Notes under the pieces: model-generated | What the model was told of the DNA's origin: nothing | The model's input: only the letters and a program-made list of their open reading frames with translations | Database searches by the model: none | Position numbers and translations under genes: made by a program | In this document: positions 232 to 14,764 of the stretch, in pieces | Position numbering within the stretch: position 1 is the stretch's first letter | How the letters are laid out: every line of letters begins with the position of its first letter | From: Salisapilia sapeloensis CBS 127946 | Taxonomy: Eukaryota > Protista > Oomycota | Direction of reading: 5' to 3' | DNA length: 50,713 bases | Assembly (NCBI GenBank): GCA_023334545.1 | Contig: JAADVB010000133.1 | Span: forward strand, 1-50,713

Positions 232-739
232 TTCGAGCAGGAGACATAGGGATTGTCAACTATTCGACCACCTGAATACCACATCATGGGCAACTCTCAA
301 ATCATTCATGCGAATGCTCCATTGAATAAATAGAAATGTTTCGACTCACTCGGACAGAGCACTTACATGGTATGCTGTCGTAACGGCGTTCAAGACACAA
401 CATACTTGACACTTCATTCCTCCCGGAAGTGATGGACATCTTTCGTACACTCAAATTTAATTTTGACCCACCAAAGCGACATTTATGCAAATCACACAAA
501 ATTCTAATCTATATTTCAATGTTCCATCTCTTCGATAACCGAGTACAAACAAGCATCGACGCATATCCCCCATGTAGAAAATAAGTACCTCCTCTTCCTT
601 TTAACAATTTACTCTACTAATTCGTACCTTTTAAGTAATATCTATCTCTGATTGGGTCATTTGAATCAAATTGCCTCCGCCACCCTTTCGAGCTAATAAC
701 ACGTCGGCGGCAAAAGCGACGATCCAGTGCTCTCGTTCG

Positions 740-3700
740 ATGGAGGCGCCTGAAGAAGAGGAACGGTCTCGTTCCGAGCGTTTACTAAAAGGGTTGCAAG
801 AAGCCAAGACCAGGGTCGATCAGGTGCACGTCGAGGACGCTAAACACCCGGATTTGTACGACCAACTGACGACACAAGCAGAGCCACAAAACTACTTTTT
901 CGAGCCATACGCGACGCAGTGGTGCCCACAGGTCGTGAAAAAAGGATCTGTCATCCCATTGCCTTCCGTCGTTGGCAATGCATTAGGAGATGCACAGACA
1001 TTGACGCTTTCAGGACTACTACCTGCTCTCGACGCCGCGTGGACGTCCATCGACACTAAGTTTTACTTGTGGAGTTATCGTGATCGTTCTCGTTTCGCTA
1101 GTTTCCAATTCGACCAAGCTGTTGTATCTGCTGCATTATGTCTACGTCCAAAGCCGGGTGTCTTCACAGACAAGGTGCAGCATGTCATTGCGGTCGCAAC
1201 GACCGTCGAAGTCGTTCTCCTTGCACTCGTCTTTGACGGAGATGACCCGGAGAAGGGAAACTTTAAATTGCAACGGACGAAACTTAGTGTGAGTACGGAC
1301 GACTGCCTCGTCCGACGTCTATTGCCTACACGTAACGGCCGAATCTTCTTTGGTGGCTCTGACGGTGGTCTCTACGAGCTTCAGTACGGCTCCGACGCTT
1401 CTATCAAGGGCGCAGGGTACATTACGAGCTTGCTTCCCCTCTCTTTCTTACACAAGCCGTGCCGTAAAGTCGCTCATACGTCCACGTACGCCAACTACTT
1501 GCCTTCTTTCCTCATGGCCTTGGCGGGTGCTCCAGGCAAGCTTCGGGACTTTGCGCTTGACGACACTCGTCAGATCTTGTATGCTCTGCACGAGTCTGGA
1601 CAGGTGACTGTCTTTGATTTAGGTGTTGACGGCATGCAGACGAAGACGGTCGGATCGTTGGATTTATTGGCTGCGAGTGCCAAGTATGCGCGTCAGAATC
1701 GACGTACGCATGTGTCTTGTCCGGATGAACGTCTGTTCCAGAATGGGAGTATGCAGGTCGTGTCTCTAGCGGTGATTCCAACGGATGAGTCTGCCTTTGT
1801 GACGCTTGTTGCGACGACCTCAAATAGTTTGCGCTTGTACATGACTGTGTATGCTCGACACGCGTACTCGATGGGTAGCAGCATTCCCATTACAGTGCGT
1901 CCTTCGCGCATCGAAGTGGTGCACGTGCGTCTACCTCCACCTTCCATCCAGCTAGCTGACGCGCCTCCGTATCACAGTAAAGAAGGCATGCAGCCTGGTG
2001 TGGCACCAGGAAAGACGCCGTCCAACGTTCACGTGACGTTCCATCGCCACGGCGTCTTCCTCGTCGTGGACGGGCGAAAGGACGACGAAGACCAATTGGT
2101 AGAAATCGCACATGATCCAGTCGCATCTACGTCCGTCGCATCTACTAGAAAGACAGCTATTAGAGAGTCTGTCTCGACGGACTCTTGTGCTGGTAAAGTC
2201 GTCGATATCCAGGAACTTCCCATCACATTCCATCGAGCTTCCTTTGCTGCATCCATTGGTCCTGTGACTGGTAAAAAGCGCAACTTTGACGAAATGTCTA
2301 GTACAGCTACGACGTCAGGCGAGTCAGTCGAGATTCTAGGTGAAATGGCGCGACAGTTCTACGAACCATCGAGGCACTTTTTGTGTCTAACGCACGCCGG
2401 CATTCAACTCATGAAGAAAGTGCGTCCGATTGATCAGCTCCATCGGACGTTAGTCGAGTCTCGAGGTGGCAATCTACGCGTGACGCTCGCACCGTTCGTT
2501 CGTAGCTTTGGAGAGATTCAAGTCGTTAGTATGCTGCTAGGACTCGCGTGTGGTGTCTCGAGCGATCCGCTGACGAATGAAGCTGCGACAGCGTCTTTGA
2601 TTCATCGTCGAGGAGGCTTTAAAAGCGACGAATACATCTTTGCAGCCGCGGTGCAAGGTATCTTTGAATGCTGCCAAGGTCCTTCCACGACGTCCGAACA
2701 GCCGACGCAGACGCATGAAGCTGATGCATCCAGCACTCGTATCGTCCTCACGACGGAATTAGGTATGTCGTACCAACACGATGGACTGCTTGTCTTTGTC
2801 AGTCGCGTCTTGCGTCCTTTGTGGAGGCCCAAGACTGTTGGCATCAAGACTCCTGCCGGTGTCTTTGCTCCACGTCAATCGGCGGACGATCTGGATGAAA
2901 CGCGTGAAGTCTTGTACCAGCTCCGACAGCTTCTAGAGCGTAGTGGCCCGTATGCTGTGGCGATTGGAAATGCATCGATGAATGATCAGAGTCACATGGA
3001 AGGTGTCCACGACTCGAACGGAGTGTCTCGCGTCGCGCAATTAACGATGAAGCACCAGCAGTCTCGTTCTGAAGACCAGCTCCGTCGTGAGCTTCGTGCC
3101 AAGTCGGAGCAGCAGTCGCTCTTCTGTATTTATCGCCTTGTCCTTCGATCCATCGAAGCCATCTCGTTGCTACGTCTCTCGATGCAGTACAGCGTTCCTC
3201 TAGATGAATCTCTTGCGAATCTTGCGTTTGGAGACTTTGTCGCATCGAATGATGGGTCCATGGCATGCAAAGGCATGGTCAAGGCGTTAATGAAGGGCAG
3301 AGAAGAGAATAACGAGTACCTCGTGAAACAGCTTCGTGAGCAGTGTCCGTCGTACTTTAGCGTCAGCGATTTGTACCACTACCAAGGCTACAAGAGTCTC
3401 GCGAATGCCAAGTTGAGTAACGCTGGACAGCGATTAACACTCGCACAAGAGTCTTTGACACAGTTTTTGAACTCTTGTCATATGTGGGACTCGGAAGACT
3501 GCGTTCCGGTGTTACAGTCCATCTGTGAAGACTATGCGATGCTCCAGTTCTACGAAGGTGTCGTTAAGCTGTCGCTTGCTTGCGCCAAGAACTTTGATAA
3601 GGGCGAGGACTTGAGTGGCGGGAAAGTGACATGGAAACGAAATTGCTTTGGCGTGATCTTGCTAGCGCTGCAGCGACTCTTGTCAGGCGAAGCGAGTGTT

Positions 3701-5119
3701 CGGCAGAGCCCGCAAACTGTGGATGAGCTCGTGCGTCTGGATGATGAGACGAAAGAGCGTTGTATCAGCGACGTCTTCCTCTACTCGCTAGCATCGGACG
3801 ATCAGGACTTTCATGAACTCTTGTACACGTGGCTGTACGAGAACAATCACCACGAGAGACTGGTGAATCTAGACTCGACGCACGTGGAAGAGTTCTTAAA
3901 AGCGAAAGACCAGGACCTGCTCATTCGACTCTACATGCGCCAGCGCAAGTACCTTGAAGCAGCCAAGGTCTGGTGGGCGAGAGGCATTGCGGATAGTGTG
4001 AATGGCAGTCCGGATCTACCGAAGAGACAGTACTATTTGACCAAGTCTCTCGGATGCCTGAAGAGTCTGGAGGAGACGGGCAAGGTCGCGGATGCTTTGA
4101 ACGCCGTGCGAGGAGCGTTGGAGCTGCTGCAGCTCCAGATGCGCGTGCTACAGAGTCTGGAACAGAGCACGAGCGACTTACAGGCGGCTGGTGGATCTCC
4201 TGACGACATTCGTAGCCGCCAAGAAGATCTGAAACGACTCATGCTGGAACAGGTAGATGCATCGGCGCTCTACAACGAATTCGCGTATCGATACGACATG
4301 TGGTCGGAGTGTCTCCACATCATCCACTCGTGCCAATCGGAAGAAGAGGACGTTGTCCATACGCTCTGGCGTAAAATCATCTTTAGCACCGTGCCTGGAT
4401 CCACTAACTCGAGTGCGTTCAATGCGTGGCGGACGGAGCAATGTGGACTCGCTGGTATCTCGACGGATTATGCTGGCACGAGTTCCTTTGAAGGTGGCGT
4501 CTGGATCGGACAGCTTCAGTCCAAGCTACTGCATTTGGGTAAAGCTCTGCTGAGTGATGCGTTTGATCGGCATTCCGCATCCAACTCGAGTACACCTGGC
4601 GTTGTTTTCCCTGTGAGCTTCTTGGCGAAAGAGCTGGAGCACATTTCGTCGTGGTACTTGAAACTGAGCGACCTGCCATCCTTTGCGTCGCCGACATCGT
4701 CCTTGGACTCAGCCATGTTCAACTGGGTGCTAAAGCTCTTTTTGGACGTTGGTGTCGCCCACCGAGACTTGTTGAATTATTATGAACAAATCTATCGGGA
4801 ACAAGGATCCGTCCAATGGACACTCCACTTGCTTCGCTCGATTTACACCATTTTGATCCAGTGGAAGAAATTCGCGAGTTCGCCAAGGGCTGGCAAGGAC
4901 AGTCTAGACGACTTTGTCGCTTGCTGCCCGCACATGGTAAACCTGTGTGACGACTTTATCATTGATTTACAAGCCCTCCCACAAGGTACTTTTGTTACTA
5001 GACGTAGGAAGAATGTGTTTTCTGATGCAATTGTAGATGATGGCACGTTGACAAGCAATTTGCTGGACCAGTACCGCCGATTTAAAAAGGAGTTGCTTCA
5101 TTTAGGTCGAAGCATGTAG
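740..5119 (+). CDS. NUP155: Nucleoporin Nup155/Nup170
   Basis: ~1450-aa ORF. The ORF-track start at 671 is TTG; the first ATG is at 740. It has the N-terminal beta-propeller motifs (AWTSIDTKFYLW, KPGVF, GRIFFG, LYELQY) and an alpha-solenoid C-terminal half. A probable in-frame 51-nt intron lies at 4986-5036. Confidence 0.93.
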   Translation: MEAPEEEERSRSERLLKGLQEAKTRVDQVHVEDAKHPDLYDQLTTQAEPQNYFFEPYATQWCPQVVKKGSVIPLPSVVGNALGDAQTLTLSGLLPALDAAWTSIDTKFYLWSYRDRSRFASFQFDQAVVSAALCLRPKPGVFTDKVQHVIAVATTVEVVLLALVFDGDDPEKGNFKLQRTKLSVSTDDCLVRRLLPTRNGRIFFGGSDGGLYELQYGSDASIKGAGYITSLLPLSFLHKPCRKVAHTSTYANYLPSFLMALAGAPGKLRDFALDDTRQILYALHESGQVTVFDLGVDGMQTKTVGSLDLLAASAKYARQNRRTHVSCPDERLFQNGSMQVVSLAVIPTDESAFVTLVATTSNSLRLYMTVYARHAYSMGSSIPITVRPSRIEVVHVRLPPPSIQLADAPPYHSKEGMQPGVAPGKTPSNVHVTFHRHGVFLVVDGRKDDEDQLVEIAHDPVASTSVASTRKTAIRESVSTDSCAGKVVDIQELPITFHRASFAASIGPVTGKKRNFDEMSSTATTSGESVEILGEMARQFYEPSRHFLCLTHAGIQLMKKVRPIDQLHRTLVESRGGNLRVTLAPFVRSFGEIQVVSMLLGLACGVSSDPLTNEAATASLIHRRGGFKSDEYIFAAAVQGIFECCQGPSTTSEQPTQTHEADASSTRIVLTTELGMSYQHDGLLVFVSRVLRPLWRPKTVGIKTPAGVFAPRQSADDLDETREVLYQLRQLLERSGPYAVAIGNASMNDQSHMEGVHDSNGVSRVAQLTMKHQQSRSEDQLRRELRAKSEQQSLFCIYRLVLRSIEAISLLRLSMQYSVPLDESLANLAFGDFVASNDGSMACKGMVKALMKGREENNEYLVKQLREQCPSYFSVSDLYHYQGYKSLANAKLSNAGQRLTLAQESLTQFLNSCHMWDSEDCVPVLQSICEDYAMLQFYEGVVKLSLACAKNFDKGEDLSGGKVTWKRNCFGVILLALQRLLSGEASVRQSPQTVDELVRLDDETKERCISDVFLYSLASDDQDFHELLYTWLYENNHHERLVNLDSTHVEEFLKAKDQDLLIRLYMRQRKYLEAAKVWWARGIADSVNGSPDLPKRQYYLTKSLGCLKSLEETGKVADALNAVRGALELLQLQMRVLQSLEQSTSDLQAAGGSPDDIRSRQEDLKRLMLEQVDASALYNEFAYRYDMWSECLHIIHSCQSEEEDVVHTLWRKIIFSTVPGSTNSSAFNAWRTEQCGLAGISTDYAGTSSFEGGVWIGQLQSKLLHLGKALLSDAFDRHSASNSSTPGVVFPVSFLAKELEHISSWYLKLSDLPSFASPTSSLDSAMFNWVLKLFLDVGVAHRDLLNYYEQIYREQGSVQWTLHLLRSIYTILIQWKKFASSPRAGKDSLDDFVACCPHMVNLCDDFIIDLQALPQGTFVTRRRKNVFSDAIVDDGTLTSNLLDQYRRFKKELLHLGRSM

Positions 5120-5297
5120 ACACGTTATCTGGACGATGGACAGGATGATCCGGTGGGAGTAATAAATAGGAGCTCGGTTGGACCTCAGACACTTTTCCTC
5201 AAGTCGTTTTTGTATATTCCAAGCTACAATTAAACACTACTTCTCTCCTTTATGGGGCTCTTAACTATCCACATCGGGTGCGTCTAGTATATATCGA

Positions 5298-6516
5298 CTA
5301 AAAGCGCTGCATGGATAGTTTCATGTGCACGGCGCCCGTATCGACCATCTCTGGCTCATTCTCAGACCCGCGCTTCTTGCCAGCACCAACCGACATGGCT
5401 GAGTGTCGGACCATCGAACCGAAACCTCGTACCGGTCGCGAGACAACGCCGACCATACCTGCTCCCATGCCTTTCGCAAGTCCTCCAATACCATTCGCCT
5501 TAGCTCCGTTCACAGGTTCTTTCCATACACCCTTGATTCCTTTGTAGAACCCTCTACCAACACCTTCAGCCCCTGCCATCAAGTGCTCACTAAAGTTGGA
5601 AGCCCACTCTTTTGGCATTTGCAAAGGTATCCATTCATCTCTTGCTGTATCGCCTGTGGGGTCATCACTGGACACTTGGGAAGGGAGTTCTTGGAGCATA
5701 GCTGTGGTCACGACGCCAGTGCCCATCAGTCGATCGGAACGTAGTTTATGCCGATCAAGCACTTCGATTAGAAGAGGCGACTTGCCATCCCATGACAGCA
5801 TCAGCTTCTGGTTCGCCCATCGAGGATTAGCATCCTTGTGGACGTGAGGACTAGAGATGGATTGCTCGCCTAGACTTAGACGTACGTAGGGGCTAGATTT
5901 GTCACTGACACCCACTGGTACGAGGTTGGCTGCTTCGATCAAGTCGATGACTACGATACCGACGTACTCGACCATGCCGTGAGATTTGGCGGTAGCACTT
6001 GAACTTTTCCTACGATTCGGAGAAGAGGATCGCCTCATGCTAAACGGAGATTGTGGAGATTTTGCAAATGACTGCGCGTGCTGTGGACTACCAGTCTGAA
6101 AGTATCGATGCTGGTACTTGTCGACGATAAAGCTTTCCCTTTGGTCACGAGTAGACCTTTCATCCGGTTTCATCGCTTGTGACGGGAGGTTGGACTCAAG
6201 GAGACGATTGACCTCAGCATTGCCCACTTGGTCGACTTTGTCAATTTGCTCTGCCTATGTTCTCGTCCGATTAGAATATCATACACAGAAATCTAAAGGA
6301 ATGGACTGTACGCACGGTCCACTTGTCGAGAGTGCAGCTTAGGACGAAGGAGATGTGCACGCCGAGTGAGCGATGCACACCGGCGCATTGGGTGCATATG
6401 AAGCAGCCAAGAGATACGGAGGCCCATTTCGGCATTTCGGCATTGCAGTCCGCGCAATGGGTATTCTCCGGTCGAGACAGTATTTCTGAAAGTCGTGCTT
6501 GATAACTTGCGTCCAT
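5298..6516 (-). CDS. ArfGAP + C2 domain protein (AGD12/ZAC-like) with a C-terminal ATG2/VPS13 'ATG_C'-like Gly-rich amphipathic segment; 385 aa
   Basis: Exons 6316-6516 and 5298-6254, with a 61-nt GT-AG intron. ArfGAP CADC-x16-CTQC...HRSLGVHIS...LDKW is joined across the intron to AEQIDKVDQVGNAE. C2 domain: VGIVVIDLIEAANL...SSPYV...LMGTG. C-terminus: GAEGVGRGFYKGIKGVWKEPVNGAKANGIGGLAKGMGAGMVGVVSRPV. Confidence 0.88.
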
Positions 6517-7143
6517 CCCATTACCAGGTGACGTCGTGGTCGGTGTCGAAGATGCAGTCGTGTCTAGCGTTTCTATTGCGTAATTATTGTAGGAGGAAGG
6601 AGAGATGGTACAGAGTATGGGAGGAACCGTTGTCAGTGTCACAAGTATTTCTTTCGAGGTCTTCCTGGCGTCCTGCCATTCTTATCTATGGAGTACTAGC
6701 GTCCTCAGACTGTACCCACTCTGCCAATCAGACTGGACGGAACGAAAGGGGGTATTGCCCATCAAGATAATAGAAAGGGTGGTACGTCATTGGAAAATAG
6801 TAAAATGTTCATGAAGAAACGTACAATCCTATCTACACTTGCTGCATGACCTACCAACATCTCGTATCATCTTCTTAACAAATTATATTCGCCACCTCGG
6901 CGGCAGAGAAACCCGGCTGAAAAACATCTTATTTGTTTCGCCCGTTCGGATTGAAAACGGACGCAAGTGGCATCTTGGCAGCCGCTCTGGATACTTGCCA
7001 TCTTCTTCTCAGTCGATTTCACGTGCATTTACACCAGTCCAAGTGACTCTTCGGAACGCAGCATCGCAATTTATTTGACTAGACTATTGCAAAGAACTGG
7101 AGATAAAGAAAGCTGACAAGGACGTTGAGTGAAAGAGAAAAGC

Positions 7144-10100
7144 ATGAGCAGCGAACATGTACAGCCCCACCGGAAGAAGCGACGCTTGGACGACATGGAG
7201 CCGTACTCGTACTCGAGCCCGAGGGTACGACGTCTCTCAACTACGCATCGTCCTCGTAGCTCGCTCGATGAACGCATCGGACTGCCGTTGCCAAGTACAC
7301 CTACTCAAGATACACCATCGTTTCCAGCTATCTTTATGCCTTCCTTCGGTATCACGGAGCAGACTACAGCTAGCAATGCCAATGCACCAGAAGCAGTTTC
7401 TTTACCGACGTATGACCACTTGCAAGTCGTAGAGAAGATCGACAATGCGACTACCGTGCAAGATGAAAATGAGAATCCACCAGTAATGCCACAACCATCG
7501 GAACTAGAGAAGACTACGGGCAATCCTACATCAAACACAGGTGAGGGAGAGATACAAAAGTCCAAACAAAAGCGGAAAAAGACAGCGAATTCACCAGAGC
7601 GACTGGTACGTCCAGTTCCTAAACGACTTCGATCGCTCTCCTACCCGACACCCGTACCTGCTCAGATCTTTCAATCCTCTTATTCACATGTACCCAGTTC
7701 TTCTTCTTGTTTCTGTGTAATAGTCTAACGCTATGGTGATAGAGACCAACCGTGAATAGTAATAGTACTTGGAATGATGAAACACTCTCCATCTCGTCTA
7801 GTGCTGTCATACTCCAGCACAAGTCTCATAGTCCGTTAAGCAAAGCTGAATCTGCTCCAATATCCACAATGCATGATAAAACGCAGGAGTACGAGGCCAA
7901 AGTAGACGCGATGAGAAATCCAAATAACAAGCTATCGGAGCCTATGCTTGCAGCCAAAGAGAGTGTCTTAAATGATGAACCGACTCTTATTGATGACCAA
8001 AACAACGACGAGGACGAGGAATTAAAGGATTCACAGGACTGCTTTAAACAATTGAGTGTATCTCCAGGTCCATCGGAAGGTCTTAATGGACCACTACAGT
8101 TCGTACTAGGCGAATCAATCATGTCTACCTTGTCAGATGAACAGAAGAAGATGATAACGTCCAAAGGATTCAATCGATTCGACGTTTCTGAACCTGGTAC
8201 TTCCATGTCCATTGGCCGAGCAGACTTTGAAGGCATCTTGGCTGGCGGAAATGAGCGACATAGGAAGTTACTCGACCAATTAAGTTTGTCGCATGCTGTG
8301 ATCCACGTGTCTGCAATCGAAGGAGCGTCTGACACGAACCAAGTCGTTGTCCAAGTAGAAAACACAAGCTCCTTTGGTGTTCTTATCAATTCCGACTCGC
8401 AAGTGCCTCGAGGTGAACGAAGAGCAATTGATTTGAATGACATTGTGACACTTGCAGCCGTGCATGGAGAAGGTGACGACGTTCTATCGCTAAGTCTCGT
8501 CTTGCAACAAGTAGAATCGCCGTCTCGACCGCCATTCCTTTCGCCTATGCTTGTCAAGCCAGAAGTCGACAATCGCTCCGTGTCGACAGTGAAGACGGAA
8601 GTAGCTTCTTCAGACCAGACCATACTCGTCAGTCTGCCTTTGCGTCCAGGGCATCCTGCACCTGACTCACAGACAAGTGCTCTTGCAGGCATACCATCTA
8701 GTGCTTCCTTGAGTCAGAGCGGATGTGATGACATGCAGATGTTGAATGCTGTATCCGTCCGGAAGCTTTCTGTAAATGTACTTGTAGCAGATCCATTCAC
8801 ATCCATTGGAAAAGGGAAGAAGGGTGAGTCGACAGGGCATAAGGCGGAACATCAGTGCTATCGAGAGGCAGTGGAAGGACTCTTGTCACCATTCGCTTCC
8901 ACCAGTACGATTGACATTAACAGCAACGGATGTGCGACCGAGTCGGCACTTGGGAACGCTTTAACTGATGGAAGTGACATTACGGTCTACGCAGGTGATG
9001 GCGACAAATGCAAGATCATTGCAGAGGATGTGAATGGACTTCCGAAGCCACTGCGGAAACCAGAGCTATTGCAATTAGTGACACAAGCAACTTCCACGAG
9101 TTTACCTGGGAAGAAAGTGATCATCGTCTTTACGACGAATGCGCTTGCTGCCAACTTACTTGCAGAGTATGCGTTAGCTCATGTCATCTACATCAATTCT
9201 TCCTCCTCGTGTCGTCGTCGAGCGAGTGCTTTCTTACGAGCTTTTATTGCGTCCGTCGCTCGAGGGTATTCTGTCGAACGTAGCTACCGACTAGCGGAAT
9301 CGGTTGCTCTGTACGACACACTTTGCGACCTTCGAGCAGAAAAGAATCTGTGCAAGTTAATTGGAAAGACGAGTGAATCGCTTGGAAACGTCTTAGGTGA
9401 AAACGAGGAAAGTATGACACCACTTGGATGCGCGGAAAATGTCGCTGCGATGGATGCACTCTTAATTCCGTTGCTTACACCTCATTTCGTTGCGAGAGAA
9501 AAGGAAATGGGGAAGGTGATATCGAGCTTAAGGGCAGATAGGGAACAAGTGGTCGTTTTGCATGGAGAAGGAGGTATAGGGAAGACGTCGTTGGCGACCA
9601 AAGTAGCTCGATATGCAAGTGATCGAAAGTGGTATCGGAATGGTGTTCACTACATTTCATTGAAACAGCACGTAGATGACGTTCGAAGTGGTCGGAAAGG
9701 TGGGAAGAAGAAAAAGATTGGAGATGCCATGGAAGATGAAAGCATTGCTGAAGAAGCCATGCGGCGTGTTTTCAATGAAGTTGGAGGTTTACTATGGCTT
9801 GCATCAAGGTACTGGTGTTCTATATTATCTATCTGAACATACTAACTCTAGCGCATTGTAGTTATACACAGGATCCATCTAAAGCTGAACACAGCTACTC
9901 TACGCTACTAGTACTCGATGACTGTGATGAAGTCACGCAGAGTACGTTACGACAATTCACAGAGCAATTGACTGAATGTGATAAGGAGCTTCAGCTGCTG
10001 CTTTTATCCACGACGACACCTCGATTTGGACTCGGTCCAAAGCCTCGATCCAATGTCGCGAGACAACGTGTAAAGGGACTGTCATCTCGAGATGCAGCGG

Positions 10101-10374
10101 AGCTCTTTCTCACACTAGCTCAAAAGTTTCTTCCAAGAGAACGTATTCAAAAAGGTATGGGGAAGAATGTATGCTTTGAACTATAACATCTAACAAAGTA
10201 TATGATGCACTAGTCTTGACAGACGATCGGTTGAAGACAGTTGCCAAGCTACCTGCGTTATGCAGCTTGAAGGGCAATCCACGCAATATCTGTCTTCTAG
10301 TACACAAGTGGAAGGATGGATCGGACCTCCAACTGGAAGCACATGCGTCGGAAGTATTTCAGATGATCAAGTAG
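7144..10374 (+). CDS. NLR-like protein: disordered N-terminus, FHA domain, degenerate CHAT/caspase-like domain, NB-ARC-like STAND NTPase; 1021 aa
   Basis: Exons 7144-7689, 7743-9808, 9862-10154 and 10214-10374; introns of 53, 53 and 59 nt, all GT-AG and frame-preserving. FHA: IGR...SLSHA...NTSSFG. CHAT-like: ATESALGNAL...ITVYAGDG...IIAEDVNG...AHVIYI...AFLRAF...GYSV. NTPase: Walker A GEGGIGKT, Walker B LLVLDDCD, LSSRDAAELF, GNPRNI. Confidence 0.8.
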
Positions 10375-10386
10375 GCTTTCTATCTC

Positions 10387-11604
10387 TTAAGACGGCAGCT
10401 TATCCATGTGCCTCCCCATGATGGCAAAGTGAACATGAACAACCCCCGTCGCGACGGTGGCAAGACGACTCCTATCTTCCCATGCATTGGTGAAGAGCGT
10501 TGTGTCCGAGACGAGTTCGATCGTCTTGCCCATGAGCGTCGCTTGCATTTCTTCTTTGACGCTACCCATCGGTCGCCACAAATGAACCGTCTGGGCGTAT
10601 TCTCCACTAGTGAAAGGTAGAGGCAAAAAACCATAGCCGACGACATGCGTTGCCATGCTAGCGAGATCCACTTGCCATACTTGTAGGAAAAGTCTCGGCC
10701 AGCCATTAAAGCTTGTAGTTGCATAGTGCAAGTCGAATGGATGACTCCATAGGCTGTACGGTCCGTTCTTATCGGAAGTCGTGAGTGCGACTTGAGTCTC
10801 TCCACTCGTGTCACCAGCAATGCGCTCCCATGCAGATCCATTGTCGAGCCTCCACTTGCAGGTAAAGGCTCCTCGTCCAAATTGTTGACCACTTCGAATC
10901 TCTCCCATGACATGAAGCTCCGGTTGATGCGTTGGACGTGTGCACTCAGGAGGGTTTTTTAGACTAGGCTCTTGGACCTTTTGGGATTGAGAAGGCTCAG
11001 TCGTTTTGGAGATGGATTCCTCAGAGCTAGACGAGGAAGAGGAGTCGTCATCATTGGACTGGGAAGGGGAGACACTTTTTTCCTGCTTCACCTCTGGACT
11101 CTGGTCTATAGGTGGAGAGGCACTTGCTGACTCTTGAGACGCCTTGGGAGTAGATGGAAGTTTCTCTTCTTTCGTGTTATTACCATCTTTCTCCTGACGA
11201 AAACCCTTGAGAGACTTGAGCAAGTGCGGACGTTTGATTGGACTTCTCTTCTTATTTGGACTGGATGCCTCTGATGGCTTGGGTCGAAGTGAACTACGCC
11301 TTGAAAGCATGCTTTTTGCTCGATCAGCGAGTTGCTTACGCGGAGATCTGCTTGTGATAGCTTTTGAATACAATAACAAGACAAAATGACGAAATTGCTT
11401 ACCTCTTGCCTCGTGGAAGCTGCCTTTTATCTTTGTTGATCATATTGTCCTCATCATCGGCATCGTCACTATCCGAGCTACAGTCTGATCTTTAGTGTTT
11501 CGTACGACGACATTCGGTGCTAATGGAAACCTAGACTGACGCCCGCTTGTCCCTGTATGTCGTCCAGACCTGTTCGACGGAGGTGACCGAAGACGTCGTA
11601 GCAT
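10387..11604 (-). CDS. B9D2: B9 domain (C2-like) ciliary transition-zone protein, B9D2-like, with a long Ser/Lys-rich N-terminal extension; 370 aa
   Basis: Exons 11531-11604, 11403-11477 and 10387-11350; introns of 53 and 52 nt restore the frame. B9 motifs: PELHVMGEI, SGETQV, WSHPFDLHY, GWPRLFLQVW, VGYG, LWRP. Confidence 0.85.
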
Positions 11605-11908
11605 AGTCGTTTGGAATGAAAAGTCACGCGAGGAGACTGCCGAGATCTTGAAGTCGGTTGTGAATATTCGCACGTGGCGAAACCACTTTTGCATGGGCAG
11701 GAAGAGTTCAGTAAAGCGGCGTTTCGACGTGTCCAGGATACAACGAGCGTATGAGCATCAGAAATAGGAATAAGAGTCGCCCCAAAGTCTTTTATTGCGT
11801 TTATGATCTTCCGCATCGATAGGTTTTCTAGTGTTTCTAGTCCATCTTTTGATTGATGCCAAAGTACAGTTGGAGAAAACAAGCCTGTACGAGTACTTGA
11901 GCGTACAC

Positions 11909-12424
11909 TTAGTTCTTCTTCGTACGATAACGCACGGCCTTCCTACGCTTCCGGTGCTTGTGCTTGTTCATCTTCTTCCGTCGCTTCTTTACCACACTGT
12001 CCGCCTGGTACGTGAACGTGCGTTCCATGTCGTCGAGCAGCTCGTCCACACTACGGTCGCCAGAGTCACGCAGCGGCATGTCGTCGTTCAGACCGGTCAA
12101 CATGCCCGCCATGTCCCATATTTCCTCCGACGAGGAGAGACCTAGCGCTTCGTCCGTCTCCTCTTCTTCCGGAAGAGGGAAGTTACCCACACGCCACAAG
12201 TCCATGGGAGCTGCTTGGGAGTACTTTTCCAACAGCTCCGTCGGGTCCTGCGGTCCCGTTCGTGCACCAGCAGCAGGCTGCACGGGGAAAGAGGGTGCCG
12301 AGAACAAGTTGGACGCACCAGAGGACATGAGTGCACGTCGCTGCTGTTGACGCAGGAAGGCAGAGGTCGTGCATGGGACCTTGTTCGCCTGAGCGAGCAC
12401 GCGTTTCGCGACTCGCATCGCCAT
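11909..12424 (-). CDS. COX24: Mitochondrial small-subunit ribosomal protein mS38 / COX24 / AURKAIP1 family (DUF1713)
   Basis: Basic presequence-like N-terminus; C-terminal ADSVVKKRRKKMNKHKHRKRRK signature. Confidence 0.88.
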   Translation of the reverse strand: MAMRVAKRVLAQANKVPCTTSAFLRQQQRRALMSSGASNLFSAPSFPVQPAAGARTGPQDPTELLEKYSQAAPMDLWRVGNFPLPEEEETDEALGLSSSEEIWDMAGMLTGLNDDMPLRDSGDRSVDELLDDMERTFTYQADSVVKKRRKKMNKHKHRKRRKAVRYRTKKN

Positions 12425-12565
12425 ATCGATAATCTACCTCGAGTAAGTTCAGGAAGCGCTTCCGCCACTCACACTTTCTCTTTGTTTGTGCCCGTTTCTC
12501 TTTTTCTTACTGGTACTGTACCATATCTGTACCTCGCATAGGGATGCCAACCAGTCGGGAGAAAG
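12425..12565. promoter_or_regulatory. Putative bidirectional promoter between mS38/COX24 and CPSF3 (141 nt between ATGs)
   Basis: Head-to-head geometry, with a pyrimidine-rich tract. Inferred from position only. Confidence 0.55.
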
Positions 12566-14764
12566 ATGGCGAAGCGAGCATTGGAAGTGAGCGCTGAGGA
12601 CAGTGCGGATGAACGCCATGTCATGCGGATCATGCCGCTTGGTGCAGGCAATGAGGTCGGTCGATCTTGTATTATCCTAAAGTTCCAAGGACGCACGATC
12701 ATGCTGGACTGCGGCGTCCATCCAGGATACTCGGGTCACGGCAGCCTACCATTCTTTGATGGCGTGGAAGCCGAAGAGATCGATTTGCTCCTTATCACGC
12801 ACTTCCATATTGACCATGTTGCTGCTTTACCTCATTTCACCGAGAAGACGAATTTCAAAGGTCGTGTGTTCATGACGCACCCGACGAAAGCTGTTATGCA
12901 GATGATGCTACGAGACTTTCTACGTGTCTCGAACATCTCGGTCGATGATCAGATCTACGATGATCAAGATCTGAATAACTGCGTCTCGAAAGTCGAGATC
13001 ATTGACTTTCATCAGGAGAAGACGCATAATGGAATTAAATTCACGCCGTACAATGCTGGTCACGTCCTCGGTGCATGCATGTACTTAATTGAAATCGGTG
13101 GCGTCAAGGTGCTCTACACAGGAGACTACTCGCTCGAGAACGACAGACACTTGATGGCAGCAGAGATGCCTGCCTGCTCTCCTGACGTGCTTATCGTCGA
13201 ATCCACGTACGGCGTCCAAGTCCACCAGTCCGTCGTGGAGCGTGAAGGTCGATTCACAGGTCAAGTGGAGGCGGTCGTGAGACGTGGAGGTCGCTGTCTC
13301 ATCCCTGTCTTTGCTTTGGGACGTACACAAGAGCTGCTGCTGATTCTGGACGAGCACTGGCAGAAGCATCCGGATCTCCAGGACATTCCCATCTACTTTG
13401 CATCGAAGCTAGCGGCCAAAGCCTTGCGTGTGTATCAGACGTACATTAACATGATGAACGAACGCATTCGTAAGCAGATCGCGATTGCAAATCCCTTCCA
13501 ATTCGAACACATTTCGAATCTGAAGAGTCTGGATGACTTTGATGACGCTGGACCGGCAGTCGTGATGGCGAGTCCAGGTATGCTCCAGAGCGGAGTGTCA
13601 CGACAACTCTTTGAGCGCTGGTGTGTCGACAAACGGAACGCTTGTTTGATCCCAGGGTACGTCGTGGAAGGCACATTAGCTAAAAAGATCTTGAGCGAAC
13701 CATCAGAGATCGTCGCATTGGACGGACGTGTCTTACCCATGAACTGCACGGTCGAATACATATCTTTTTCAGCTCACGCCGACTTTGTCGGGACGAGTGG
13801 CTTCGTCGAAACCCTTGCACCTCCGAACATTGTCCTTGTGCATGGCGAAAAGAATGAGATGATGCGTCTCAAGGGTGCGTTGAATAAGAAGTTCAATAAC
13901 GCGAAGGGATATGATCCGAGTATCTTTACGCCAGCGAATATGAATGAGATCGTACTTGAATTCAAGGGTGAGAAGATCGCGAAAGCTATTGGAGGATTAG
14001 CTAAAGATCAGCCGAAGCAAGGAAAAGTCGTGTCGGGACTTTTAGTGGAAGTTGATTCACAGACGCATTTGCTGGAAAAAGAAGACTTGAGTACGTACAC
14101 GACGCTCGTGGCAGGTACCATCTCCCAACGTCAGCATGTGCCGTTTGAAAGTGCTTCGATGGACGTACTCGTCGCCTTCTTGCGTCAAATGTTCGACAAG
14201 ATTGTCGAGAATAAGAACCAGGTCGTCGTTTGTGAGCAGGTAGTCATCACGCCCATGCAAGGAAAGCTGCTTGTAGAGTGGACGACGTCTCCTATGGCAG
14301 ACATGATCGCTGACTCAGTCATCGCTCTAACGATGCATGCACAGGCAAGTCCGGCAGGATTCAAGCTCAGTGGCCACCCCACCGCTGCTTGTCCGCATGA
14401 CCACTCGACAAAGAAGGAAGAAGAGCCTGCTGAGAAGCCTTCAGAGACTTCGGATAAGCCTTCGGACAAGACGTCAGAGCTCCCTGAGAATGCTTCGGAG
14501 CTGGAGAAAGCAGCACATGAGCTTGGACAGACGGATCAGGATGCTCTAAATCTCGTGATTGTCTATCGTACGCTGAAAGATCAGTTTGGAGACGTGGAAC
14601 TCGAGCTCGAGACGAATATGATCCACGTGCGAACGCCAAGTGGTGTGTCCGCGACAGTGGACTATGCGAATGCCTCGATCGAATGCAAAGACGAAGCGTT
14701 TAAGAACAAACTACAAGACACGGTGCAACGCGTAGAAACTGCGCTCCAGCCTTTGCATACATAA
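12566..14764 (+). CDS. CPSF3: Cleavage and polyadenylation specificity factor 73-kDa endonuclease (CPSF73/Ysh1)
   Basis: PLGAGNEVGRSC, MBL motif THFHIDH, AGHVLG, beta-CASP PVFALGR...ASPGMLQSG, SFSAHAD, and a CPSF73-100 C-terminal region. Confidence 0.97.
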   Translation: MAKRALEVSAEDSADERHVMRIMPLGAGNEVGRSCIILKFQGRTIMLDCGVHPGYSGHGSLPFFDGVEAEEIDLLLITHFHIDHVAALPHFTEKTNFKGRVFMTHPTKAVMQMMLRDFLRVSNISVDDQIYDDQDLNNCVSKVEIIDFHQEKTHNGIKFTPYNAGHVLGACMYLIEIGGVKVLYTGDYSLENDRHLMAAEMPACSPDVLIVESTYGVQVHQSVVEREGRFTGQVEAVVRRGGRCLIPVFALGRTQELLLILDEHWQKHPDLQDIPIYFASKLAAKALRVYQTYINMMNERIRKQIAIANPFQFEHISNLKSLDDFDDAGPAVVMASPGMLQSGVSRQLFERWCVDKRNACLIPGYVVEGTLAKKILSEPSEIVALDGRVLPMNCTVEYISFSAHADFVGTSGFVETLAPPNIVLVHGEKNEMMRLKGALNKKFNNAKGYDPSIFTPANMNEIVLEFKGEKIAKAIGGLAKDQPKQGKVVSGLLVEVDSQTHLLEKEDLSTYTTLVAGTISQRQHVPFESASMDVLVAFLRQMFDKIVENKNQVVVCEQVVITPMQGKLLVEWTTSPMADMIADSVIALTMHAQASPAGFKLSGHPTAACPHDHSTKKEEEPAEKPSETSDKPSDKTSELPENASELEKAAHELGQTDQDALNLVIVYRTLKDQFGDVELELETNMIHVRTPSGVSATVDYANASIECKDEAFKNKLQDTVQRVETALQPLHT

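Follow-up and report, generated by a model that had tools for sequence, protein, structure and literature searches.

CHAT-STAND proteins are known from bacteria and fungi as modules that combine an effector, a switch and a sensor. The gene described here, from the oomycete Salisapilia sapeloensis CBS 127946, appears to be a derivative of such a module. It occupies positions 7144 to 10374 of contig JAADVB010000133.1 (assembly GCA_023334545.1), whose forward strand was analysed over its whole length of 50,713 nucleotides and is called the window throughout. The gene lies on the + strand, as do all of its features given below, and its product carries an FHA domain, a CHAT-like domain and a STAND-type NTPase module (FHA-CHAT-STAND). 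The locus has positional orthologues in other peronosporomycete oomycetes, and its best explanation is that it encodes a non-catalytic derivative of CHAT-STAND proteins, acting as a nucleotide-dependent scaffold or adaptor; we assign this reading a probability of about 0.55.

Several described systems resemble parts of this protein. CHAT-NB-ARC and CHAT-NACHT proteins, with or without TPR repeats, occur in bacteria and protists (PF12770 with PF00931 or PF05729) and share with the oomycete protein one contiguous homologous block formed by the CHAT domain, a linker and the P-loop NTPase; when the whole block was compared by phmmer, E-values of 1e-9 to 1e-10 were obtained. The catalytic dyad is intact in most of these relatives, and most have long C-terminal tails (TPR in the two examined, P0011 and P0013), whereas the oomycete protein has no dyad, tail or winged helix and bears an FHA domain in front. 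SAVED-CHAT is an active protease triggered by a cyclic oligonucleotide. Its structure (8tl0) is the closest to the middle domain of the oomycete protein, but at an identity of 13-14%; it has a SAVED domain where the oomycete protein has the NTPase, and the oomycete CHAT-like domain, unlike that of SAVED-CHAT, is devoid of the dyad. For the C-terminal module of an orthologue, the closest structures are Apaf-1, CED-4 and the plant NLRs (ZAR1, NRC and WRR4A resistosomes), with which it shares a GxP helix and both Walker motifs; the oomycete protein differs from them in having no winged helix, MHD His, second helical domain, WD40 or LRR.

Loss of the dyad with retention of a caspase fold is known from cFLIP, other pseudo-caspases and bacterial pseudo-orthocaspases, which serve as regulators or scaffolds. 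The oomycete protein shares this combination, although the fold is all that it has in common with them, and we know of no pseudo-caspase or pseudo-orthocaspase fused to an FHA domain or to an NTPase. Truncated plant NLRs (TIR-NB, CC-NB) are NLR-type ATPases that have no sensor repeats, act with partners and belong to large polymorphic families. The oomycete gene also encodes a repeat-less NLR-type ATPase, but its N-terminal domains are different and it represents a conserved single locus. The FHA and CHAT pair itself recurs in cyanobacterial FHA+CHAT proteins (ESM Atlas clusters, 408-543 residues). These were the top three feature matches of the FHA-to-CHAT part, with scores of 0.85-0.88, values within the chance range that make them a lead only. 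Such short proteins would have little room for an NTPase.

An exhaustive phmmer search of 1.8 billion cluster representatives returned eight close clusters, with 27-34% identity to the Salisapilia protein, and 86 more distant relatives whose similarity forms a single block that begins in the middle region and includes the P-loop. An initial annotation of the window, made from the letters alone, had seen a CHAT pattern in this middle region (8748..9407), and profile comparison bears it out. When an alignment of the oomycete middle regions (A2) was compared by hhalign with an alignment of the CHAT parts of 78 of the 86 relatives (A1), 74 of these 78 being Pfam CHAT, the probability was 99.5% and the E-value 1.1e-22 over 206 columns. 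An AlphaFold 2 model of window positions 8085-9458, built from a 91-row alignment, had predicted local distance difference test (pLDDT) values of about 85-95 over the CHAT part; the input alignment included CHAT proteins, a caveat for its value as evidence of fold. The best match of the middle domain in the Protein Data Bank (PDB), as found by Foldseek, was SAVED-CHAT (E 2e-8, about 210 aligned columns), followed by caspase-4, -1, -8 and -7, CED-3 and metacaspases, so that the search for a caspase-type fold by AlphaFold, which the initial annotation had suggested, gave matches to SAVED-CHAT and to caspases. Structural matches in the AlphaFold Database (AFDB) were oomycete FHA proteins first and then clusters named CHAT. 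Judged by profile alignment and predicted structure, the middle region is homologous to CHAT domains and has a caspase-like alpha/beta fold. Direct sequence comparison gave no such result: neither the Salisapilia protein nor any of the eight oomycete middle regions matched Pfam CHAT (PF12770) at E<=10, the region as a single sequence had no significant similarity to the relatives (E 0.4-7 at library size), and PDB sequence searches with the whole protein and with the middle-region profile returned nothing meaningful. Routine annotation misses the CHAT domain because no oomycete member matches Pfam CHAT or a PDB sequence directly.

The catalytic residues have disappeared from this domain. In the hhalign column mapping, Asp occupies the position of the catalytic His (8997..8999, YAGDG in place of fsGHG), and FTTNA (9129..9143) stands at the position of vsAChS, which holds the catalytic Cys, the Cys column itself being a gap between two Thr (9132-9137). 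In the orthologues the His position is Gly, Ser, Ala or Glu, none has Cys at the second position, and both dyad residues are thus missing from every oomycete orthologue; the initial annotation had already read the His as Asp and the Cys as absent, and the orthologues all agree. Among the CHAT-NTPase relatives, 75 of 78 have retained the His and 74 of 78 the Cys. The non-catalytic motifs are retained (A-T, L..ED..G, the KLIIV strand, HVI and the final F.RA...G..i..s...A helix), and the invariant residues of the CHAT-like domain are A, T, K, V, A and A. Since the dyad is absent from all orthologues, its loss predates the divergence of the sampled oomycetes, the fold having been kept ever since.

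The C-terminal module (9459..10371) is a STAND-type NTPase that spans introns 2 and 3 and comprises the nucleotide-binding domain and the first helical domain only, as deduced from Pfam, from an AlphaFold 2 model of an orthologue and from Foldseek. It contains Walker A (GEGGIGKT, 9564-9587), Walker B (LLVLDDCD, 9905-9928) and GNP, the equivalent of GxP (10273-10281); every orthologue retains the Walker A Lys and the Walker B Asp, and the sensor-1 Arg is missing from some of them. Scans of the window exons with Pfam and NCBIfam recovered only the start of a STAND NTPase (NB-ARC, AAA_16, nSTAND3). The NB-ARC match reached 24.8 bits against a cut-off of 23.5 and covered only the first 59 profile positions, because the introns split the domain. 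The orthologues score 29-32 bits for NACHT (cut-off 26.7) and just below the cut-off for NB-ARC, so that Pfam wavers between both families, and their Walker B reads DGCD, as in NACHT proteins. The model of the Pythium oligandrum module (P0002:718-960, pLDDT 91) shows a nucleotide-binding domain followed by short helices that make up the first helical domain, where the chain stops; in Foldseek, Apaf-1 (3sfz, E 5e-8), CED-4 and the resistosomes of plants ranked higher than generic AAA+ proteins. The Salisapilia protein aligns to this module without large gaps, and its stop follows 30 residues after GNP. A winged-helix domain, an MHD motif and a repeat region (LRR, TPR or WD40) were found neither in the Salisapilia protein nor in the orthologue model. 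The NTPase had been described as a complete NB-ARC-style domain: Walker A, Walker B and GxP were correctly identified, but the module is not complete, its end falling within the first helical domain or immediately behind it. In this copy only, the part of the nucleotide-binding domain that separates the two Walker motifs contains a Lys/Gly-rich insert, GRKGGKKKKIGD (9680-9740), at a place where the length of the orthologues varies.

The domain in front of the CHAT-like region (8085..8519) is an FHA domain that is extended at its N-terminus and has helices inserted between GR and SxxH, a delimitation drawn from AlphaFold 2, Foldseek and the Pfam matches of the orthologues. Model confidence was high (pLDDT > 90 over model residues 1-145), and the FHA domains of Mek1, Pml1, Chk2 and Rad53 were matched by Foldseek with E-values of 2e-5 to 7e-4; according to the model, the fold is the beta-sandwich of FHA domains. 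Pfam FHA (PF00498) did not match the Salisapilia copy even at E<=10 and was significant in seven of the eight orthologue clusters (21.7-34.9 bits, cut-off 20.7). In the family alignment this copy reads GR, SLSH and SFG where the orthologues have GR, SRRH and TNG. G-R (confirmed at 8214-8219) and S..H are therefore retained, while the conserved Asn has become Phe and the Arg of SRRH has become Leu. This loss of the Asn and of one phosphate-side Arg is confined to this species, and RNA contigs show no sequence differences here. An FHA domain with G-R and S-x-x-H kept and the N of NG replaced is what the initial annotation had reported. It had further proposed that the domain supplies a phosphorylation input, which is plausible for the orthologues with their canonical residues and doubtful for this copy with its two losses.

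The gene is expressed and correctly spliced. The RNA evidence consists of Logan contigs from four RNA runs of the same organism, with an assembler word depth of 34-100, and the contigs of all four, placed on the window, are 100% identical to it, with zero differences. Their splice joints (7689|7743, 9808|9862 and 10154|10214, all GT..AG) join four exons into 3066 nt that encode 1021 residues and end in one terminal stop, exactly the length predicted from four exons beforehand. A donor at 7606, which would give a model of 993 residues, was ruled out by the joint 7689|7743. Exon 1 (7144..7689, 182 codons from the ATG at 7144, donor set by the RNA joint) encodes a disordered N-terminus with basic clusters resembling nuclear localization signals, in which no Pfam family was matched. 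Intron 1 (7690..7742) is 53 nt long, GT..AG, with a CTAAC branch-point-like motif and a joint seen in 4/4 RNA runs. It is followed by exon 2 (7743..9808), which by RNA joints and translation holds the SQ/LSV motif described below, the FHA domain, the CHAT-like domain and the first part of the NTPase. Intron 2 (9809..9861, 53 nt), exon 3 (9862..10154) and intron 3 (10155..10213, 59 nt), all bounded by RNA joints, lead to exon 4 (10214..10374), whose stop codon (10372-10374) is supported by RNA and stands at the same alignment position as the end of the orthologues. All three introns are 53-59 nt long, start with GTA and have a CTAAC-like branch point 12-25 nt before a TAG acceptor.

No exon is spliced on beyond the stop at 10372-10374, since the RNA contigs run colinearly through it into the next gene. 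Together with the C-terminal end shared by all orthologues, this upholds the earlier claim that C-terminal sensor repeats are lacking; the stop had been placed about 25 residues after GxP, and the short C-terminal end is real, with a measured distance of 30 residues after the Pro. The next gene is a separate, convergent B9-domain gene (10387..11379, - strand), which bounds the 3' end and was recognised from the open reading frame list and by 48% identity to the B9-C2 gene beside the P. oligandrum orthologue. The stop codons of the two convergent genes (10372-10389) are 12 nt apart, and single RNA contigs span both genes, implying either that the 3' untranslated regions overlap or that antisense transcripts were merged by the assembler.

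The close clusters with a named source all come from oomycetes: Plasmopara, Phytophthora cactorum, Peronospora, Pythium oligandrum, P. insidiosum and Albugo candida. A Phytophthora ramorum orthologue was added by profile search, whereas a word-indexed protein search with exon 2 gave no matches. In public databases the orthologues are labelled 'hypothetical' or 'FHA domain-containing protein', with or without NACHT. The proteins of Plasmopara, Phytophthora, Pythium, Albugo and the Salisapilia lineage agree in architecture and in the position of their C-terminal end. Six genes (Nup155, ArfGAP-C2, FHA-STAND, B9-C2, COX24_C-like and CPSF73) form a common neighbourhood in the window (665-13000) and in P. 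oligandrum (L002:6945-23416), with one rearrangement, which makes the Salisapilia gene a positional orthologue. Window Nup155 is 57-60% identical to that of Globisporangium, Pythium and Lagenidium, 52-55% to that of Phytophthora and Peronospora, 44% to that of Albugo and 32% to that of Aphanomyces, values that place the organism among the peronosporomycetes and outside the genera compared. The initial annotation had envisaged an unusual oomycete signalling or immunity module. One cluster per species was returned in the searches and the neighbourhood is conserved, a pattern that would suit a conserved signalling component better than an expanded family of immune receptors; the fast sequence evolution described below points the other way. 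In a tree of the CHAT and NTPase parts, the oomycete clade was monophyletic on a stem of 1.69 changes per site (Shimodaira-Hasegawa-like approximate likelihood ratio test 100), apart from the active CHAT-NTPase relatives and with no resolved sister group; the long stem is consistent with a change of function. No description of the FHA-CHAT-STAND family emerged from literature searches, although their coverage was limited and this is not proof of absence.

The arrangement of the oomycete protein is also found elsewhere. Long C-terminal tails are present in 54 of the 86 CHAT-NTPase relatives, and 20 end 180-290 residues past the P-loop. Nine of these 20 short-tailed relatives, at least one of them from a protist, have a long N-terminal extension; Pfam, applied to eight of the nine, identified SPRY-SAM in two, a receiver domain in one and a discoidin domain (F5/8 type C) in one, with no known domain before CHAT in the other four. 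The cluster of the receiver-headed relative includes a protein of the chlorarachniophyte Norrisiella, and an LRR-headed relative (P0054) has a longer tail. As judged from these domain matches, a layout of N-terminal input, CHAT and short NTPase occurs beyond oomycetes. The nine extended, short-tailed relatives give a wider setting to the earlier idea that an N-terminal domain replaces the sensor. In P0014, P0037, P0015, P0054 and P0079, SPRY-SAM, receiver, LRR or discoidin domains stand before CHAT and most of the proteins end right after the NTPase, a layout inverted with respect to classical NLRs; P0015 is the one whose cluster includes the Norrisiella protein, the other four coming from metagenome or Logan contigs.

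A working model can be formulated from these elements. The ancestry of the protein would lie in the CHAT-STAND (NLR-like) protease lineage, with the cleavage activity gone; binding of ATP would drive self-association of the ATPase module, the pseudoprotease would offer a surface for protein binding or dimerisation, and the FHA domain, which has canonical phosphothreonine-binding residues in the orthologues, would attach the protein to a phosphorylated partner. Scaffold, decoy and helper NLR are the putative roles that the initial annotation had offered for the pseudo-protease. The product is more likely to be a conserved signalling component, perhaps a nuclear one, than a pathogen receptor. 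A number of observations weigh against parts of this model. Docking on a phosphopeptide may not apply to the Salisapilia copy, where the lost Asn and SRRH Arg make phosphothreonine binding doubtful. The variable sensor-1 Arg suggests that ATP hydrolysis may be weak. With neither winged helix nor MHD, the protein cannot be locked by ADP and switched in the canonical manner of Apaf-1 or plant NLRs, and the usual STAND cycle of autoinhibition and activation is not to be assumed. Nuclear targeting is suggested by basic motifs alone. Finally, identity between the window and P. oligandrum is about 26% for FHA-CHAT-STAND, against 55-56% for Nup155, 48% for B9, 40% for ArfGAP-C2 and 91% for a CPSF73 fragment; the family evolves faster than the neighbour genes, a behaviour also compatible with a role in genetic conflict.

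The N-terminal region bears on one competing explanation. An RKKRRLDD motif resembling a nuclear localization signal (7171..7194) is kept in the orthologues as R/K-K-R-x-L/I-D/E, and a short linear motif, E-L-K-D-S-Q-D-C-F-K-Q-L-S-V (8016..8060), contains S-Q and L-S-V elements that are invariant across the family (columns S278, Q279, L285, S286 and V287 of alignment A4, and likewise in the family alignment); the basic motif and the invariant S-Q...L-S-V stand about 45 residues before the FHA domain. These motifs are a hint of nuclear, kinase-linked signalling. They have led us to consider an adaptor of a nuclear checkpoint or DNA-damage pathway with no role in immunity, in which S-Q would be a PIKK (ATM/ATR-type) site upstream of the FHA domain, as in Chk2 and Rad53, and the ATPase would provide regulated nuclear oligomerisation. 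The matches of the FHA model to Chk2, Rad53 and Mek1 and the status of the gene as a conserved positional orthologue agree with such an adaptor. It is nevertheless an unlikely identity for the protein, as FHA domains favour phosphothreonine over phosphoserine, there is one S-Q and no cluster, and core checkpoint proteins seldom evolve so rapidly. A protease or executioner still active through non-canonical catalytic residues is hardly credible: its fold and non-catalytic CHAT motifs (A-T, L..ED, the HV strand and the final helix) are kept, but in no orthologue is there a conserved His or Cys near either catalytic position, the Cys column is a gap, and none of the invariant residues listed above is His or Cys. 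Least credible of all is a decaying relic or an annotation artefact. Dyad, winged helix and repeats are lost, and FHA residues are degenerate in the Salisapilia copy, as a relic would have it; yet a frame of 1021 codons stays open over four exons and is correctly spliced in four RNA runs, the models are confident, and architecture and C-terminal end have been kept from Albugo to Phytophthora.

Slightly better placed than the checkpoint adaptor, though still improbable, is a role like that of cFLIP, in which the dead CHAT domain would pair with active CHAT-STAND paralogues, the short ATPase would co-assemble with them, and protease-driven death or defence would be tuned in either direction. It is established that dimerisation activates proteases of the caspase fold and that these are regulated by pseudo-caspases, cFLIP among them. 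Relatives with an intact dyad are common, and AFDB contains other proteins with an FHA+CHAT fold, besides a CHAT+SH2 protein; against the cFLIP-like role, another family member, P0005 from a Logan contig, is also without the dyad. The AFDB clusters concerned (W4FLM1, W4G468, A0A485LIE7 and D7FQY1) comprise FHA+CHAT-fold proteins of 537-764 residues and one CHAT fold with an SH2 name, and hint at stramenopile families of FHA-CHAT and CHAT-SH2 paralogues. A more elaborate version, which we regard as speculative and less probable than any of the nuclear or cFLIP-like roles above, would see in the gene an ancient single-locus pseudoprotease NLR relic serving as a cFLIP-like brake or platform of CHAT-protease cell death, executed by active FHA-CHAT-STAND and CHAT-STAND-SH2 paralogues, with phosphothreonine and phosphotyrosine inputs in place of the repeat sensors. 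If true, stramenopiles would have an NLR-like death or defence pathway with kinase marks as its inputs.

The non-catalytic scaffold or adaptor thus remains the preferred reading of the FHA-CHAT-STAND gene. Under it, oomycetes possess a stable CHAT-STAND derivative, kept at least since the split of Albugo from Pythium and Phytophthora, in which protease activity has gone, only the first two subdomains of the switch are left and the N-terminal FHA domain is the sole candidate input domain. A gene found in major plant- and animal-pathogenic oomycetes is hereby re-annotated, its pseudoprotease having been invisible to routine annotation. Together with its SPRY-SAM-, receiver- and discoidin-headed relatives, it may define a class of proteins, composed of an N-terminal input, a CHAT domain and a short NTPase, that lies outside the classical NLR layout. 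It would also offer a tractable case for the role of a STAND ATPase that is free of the winged-helix lock.

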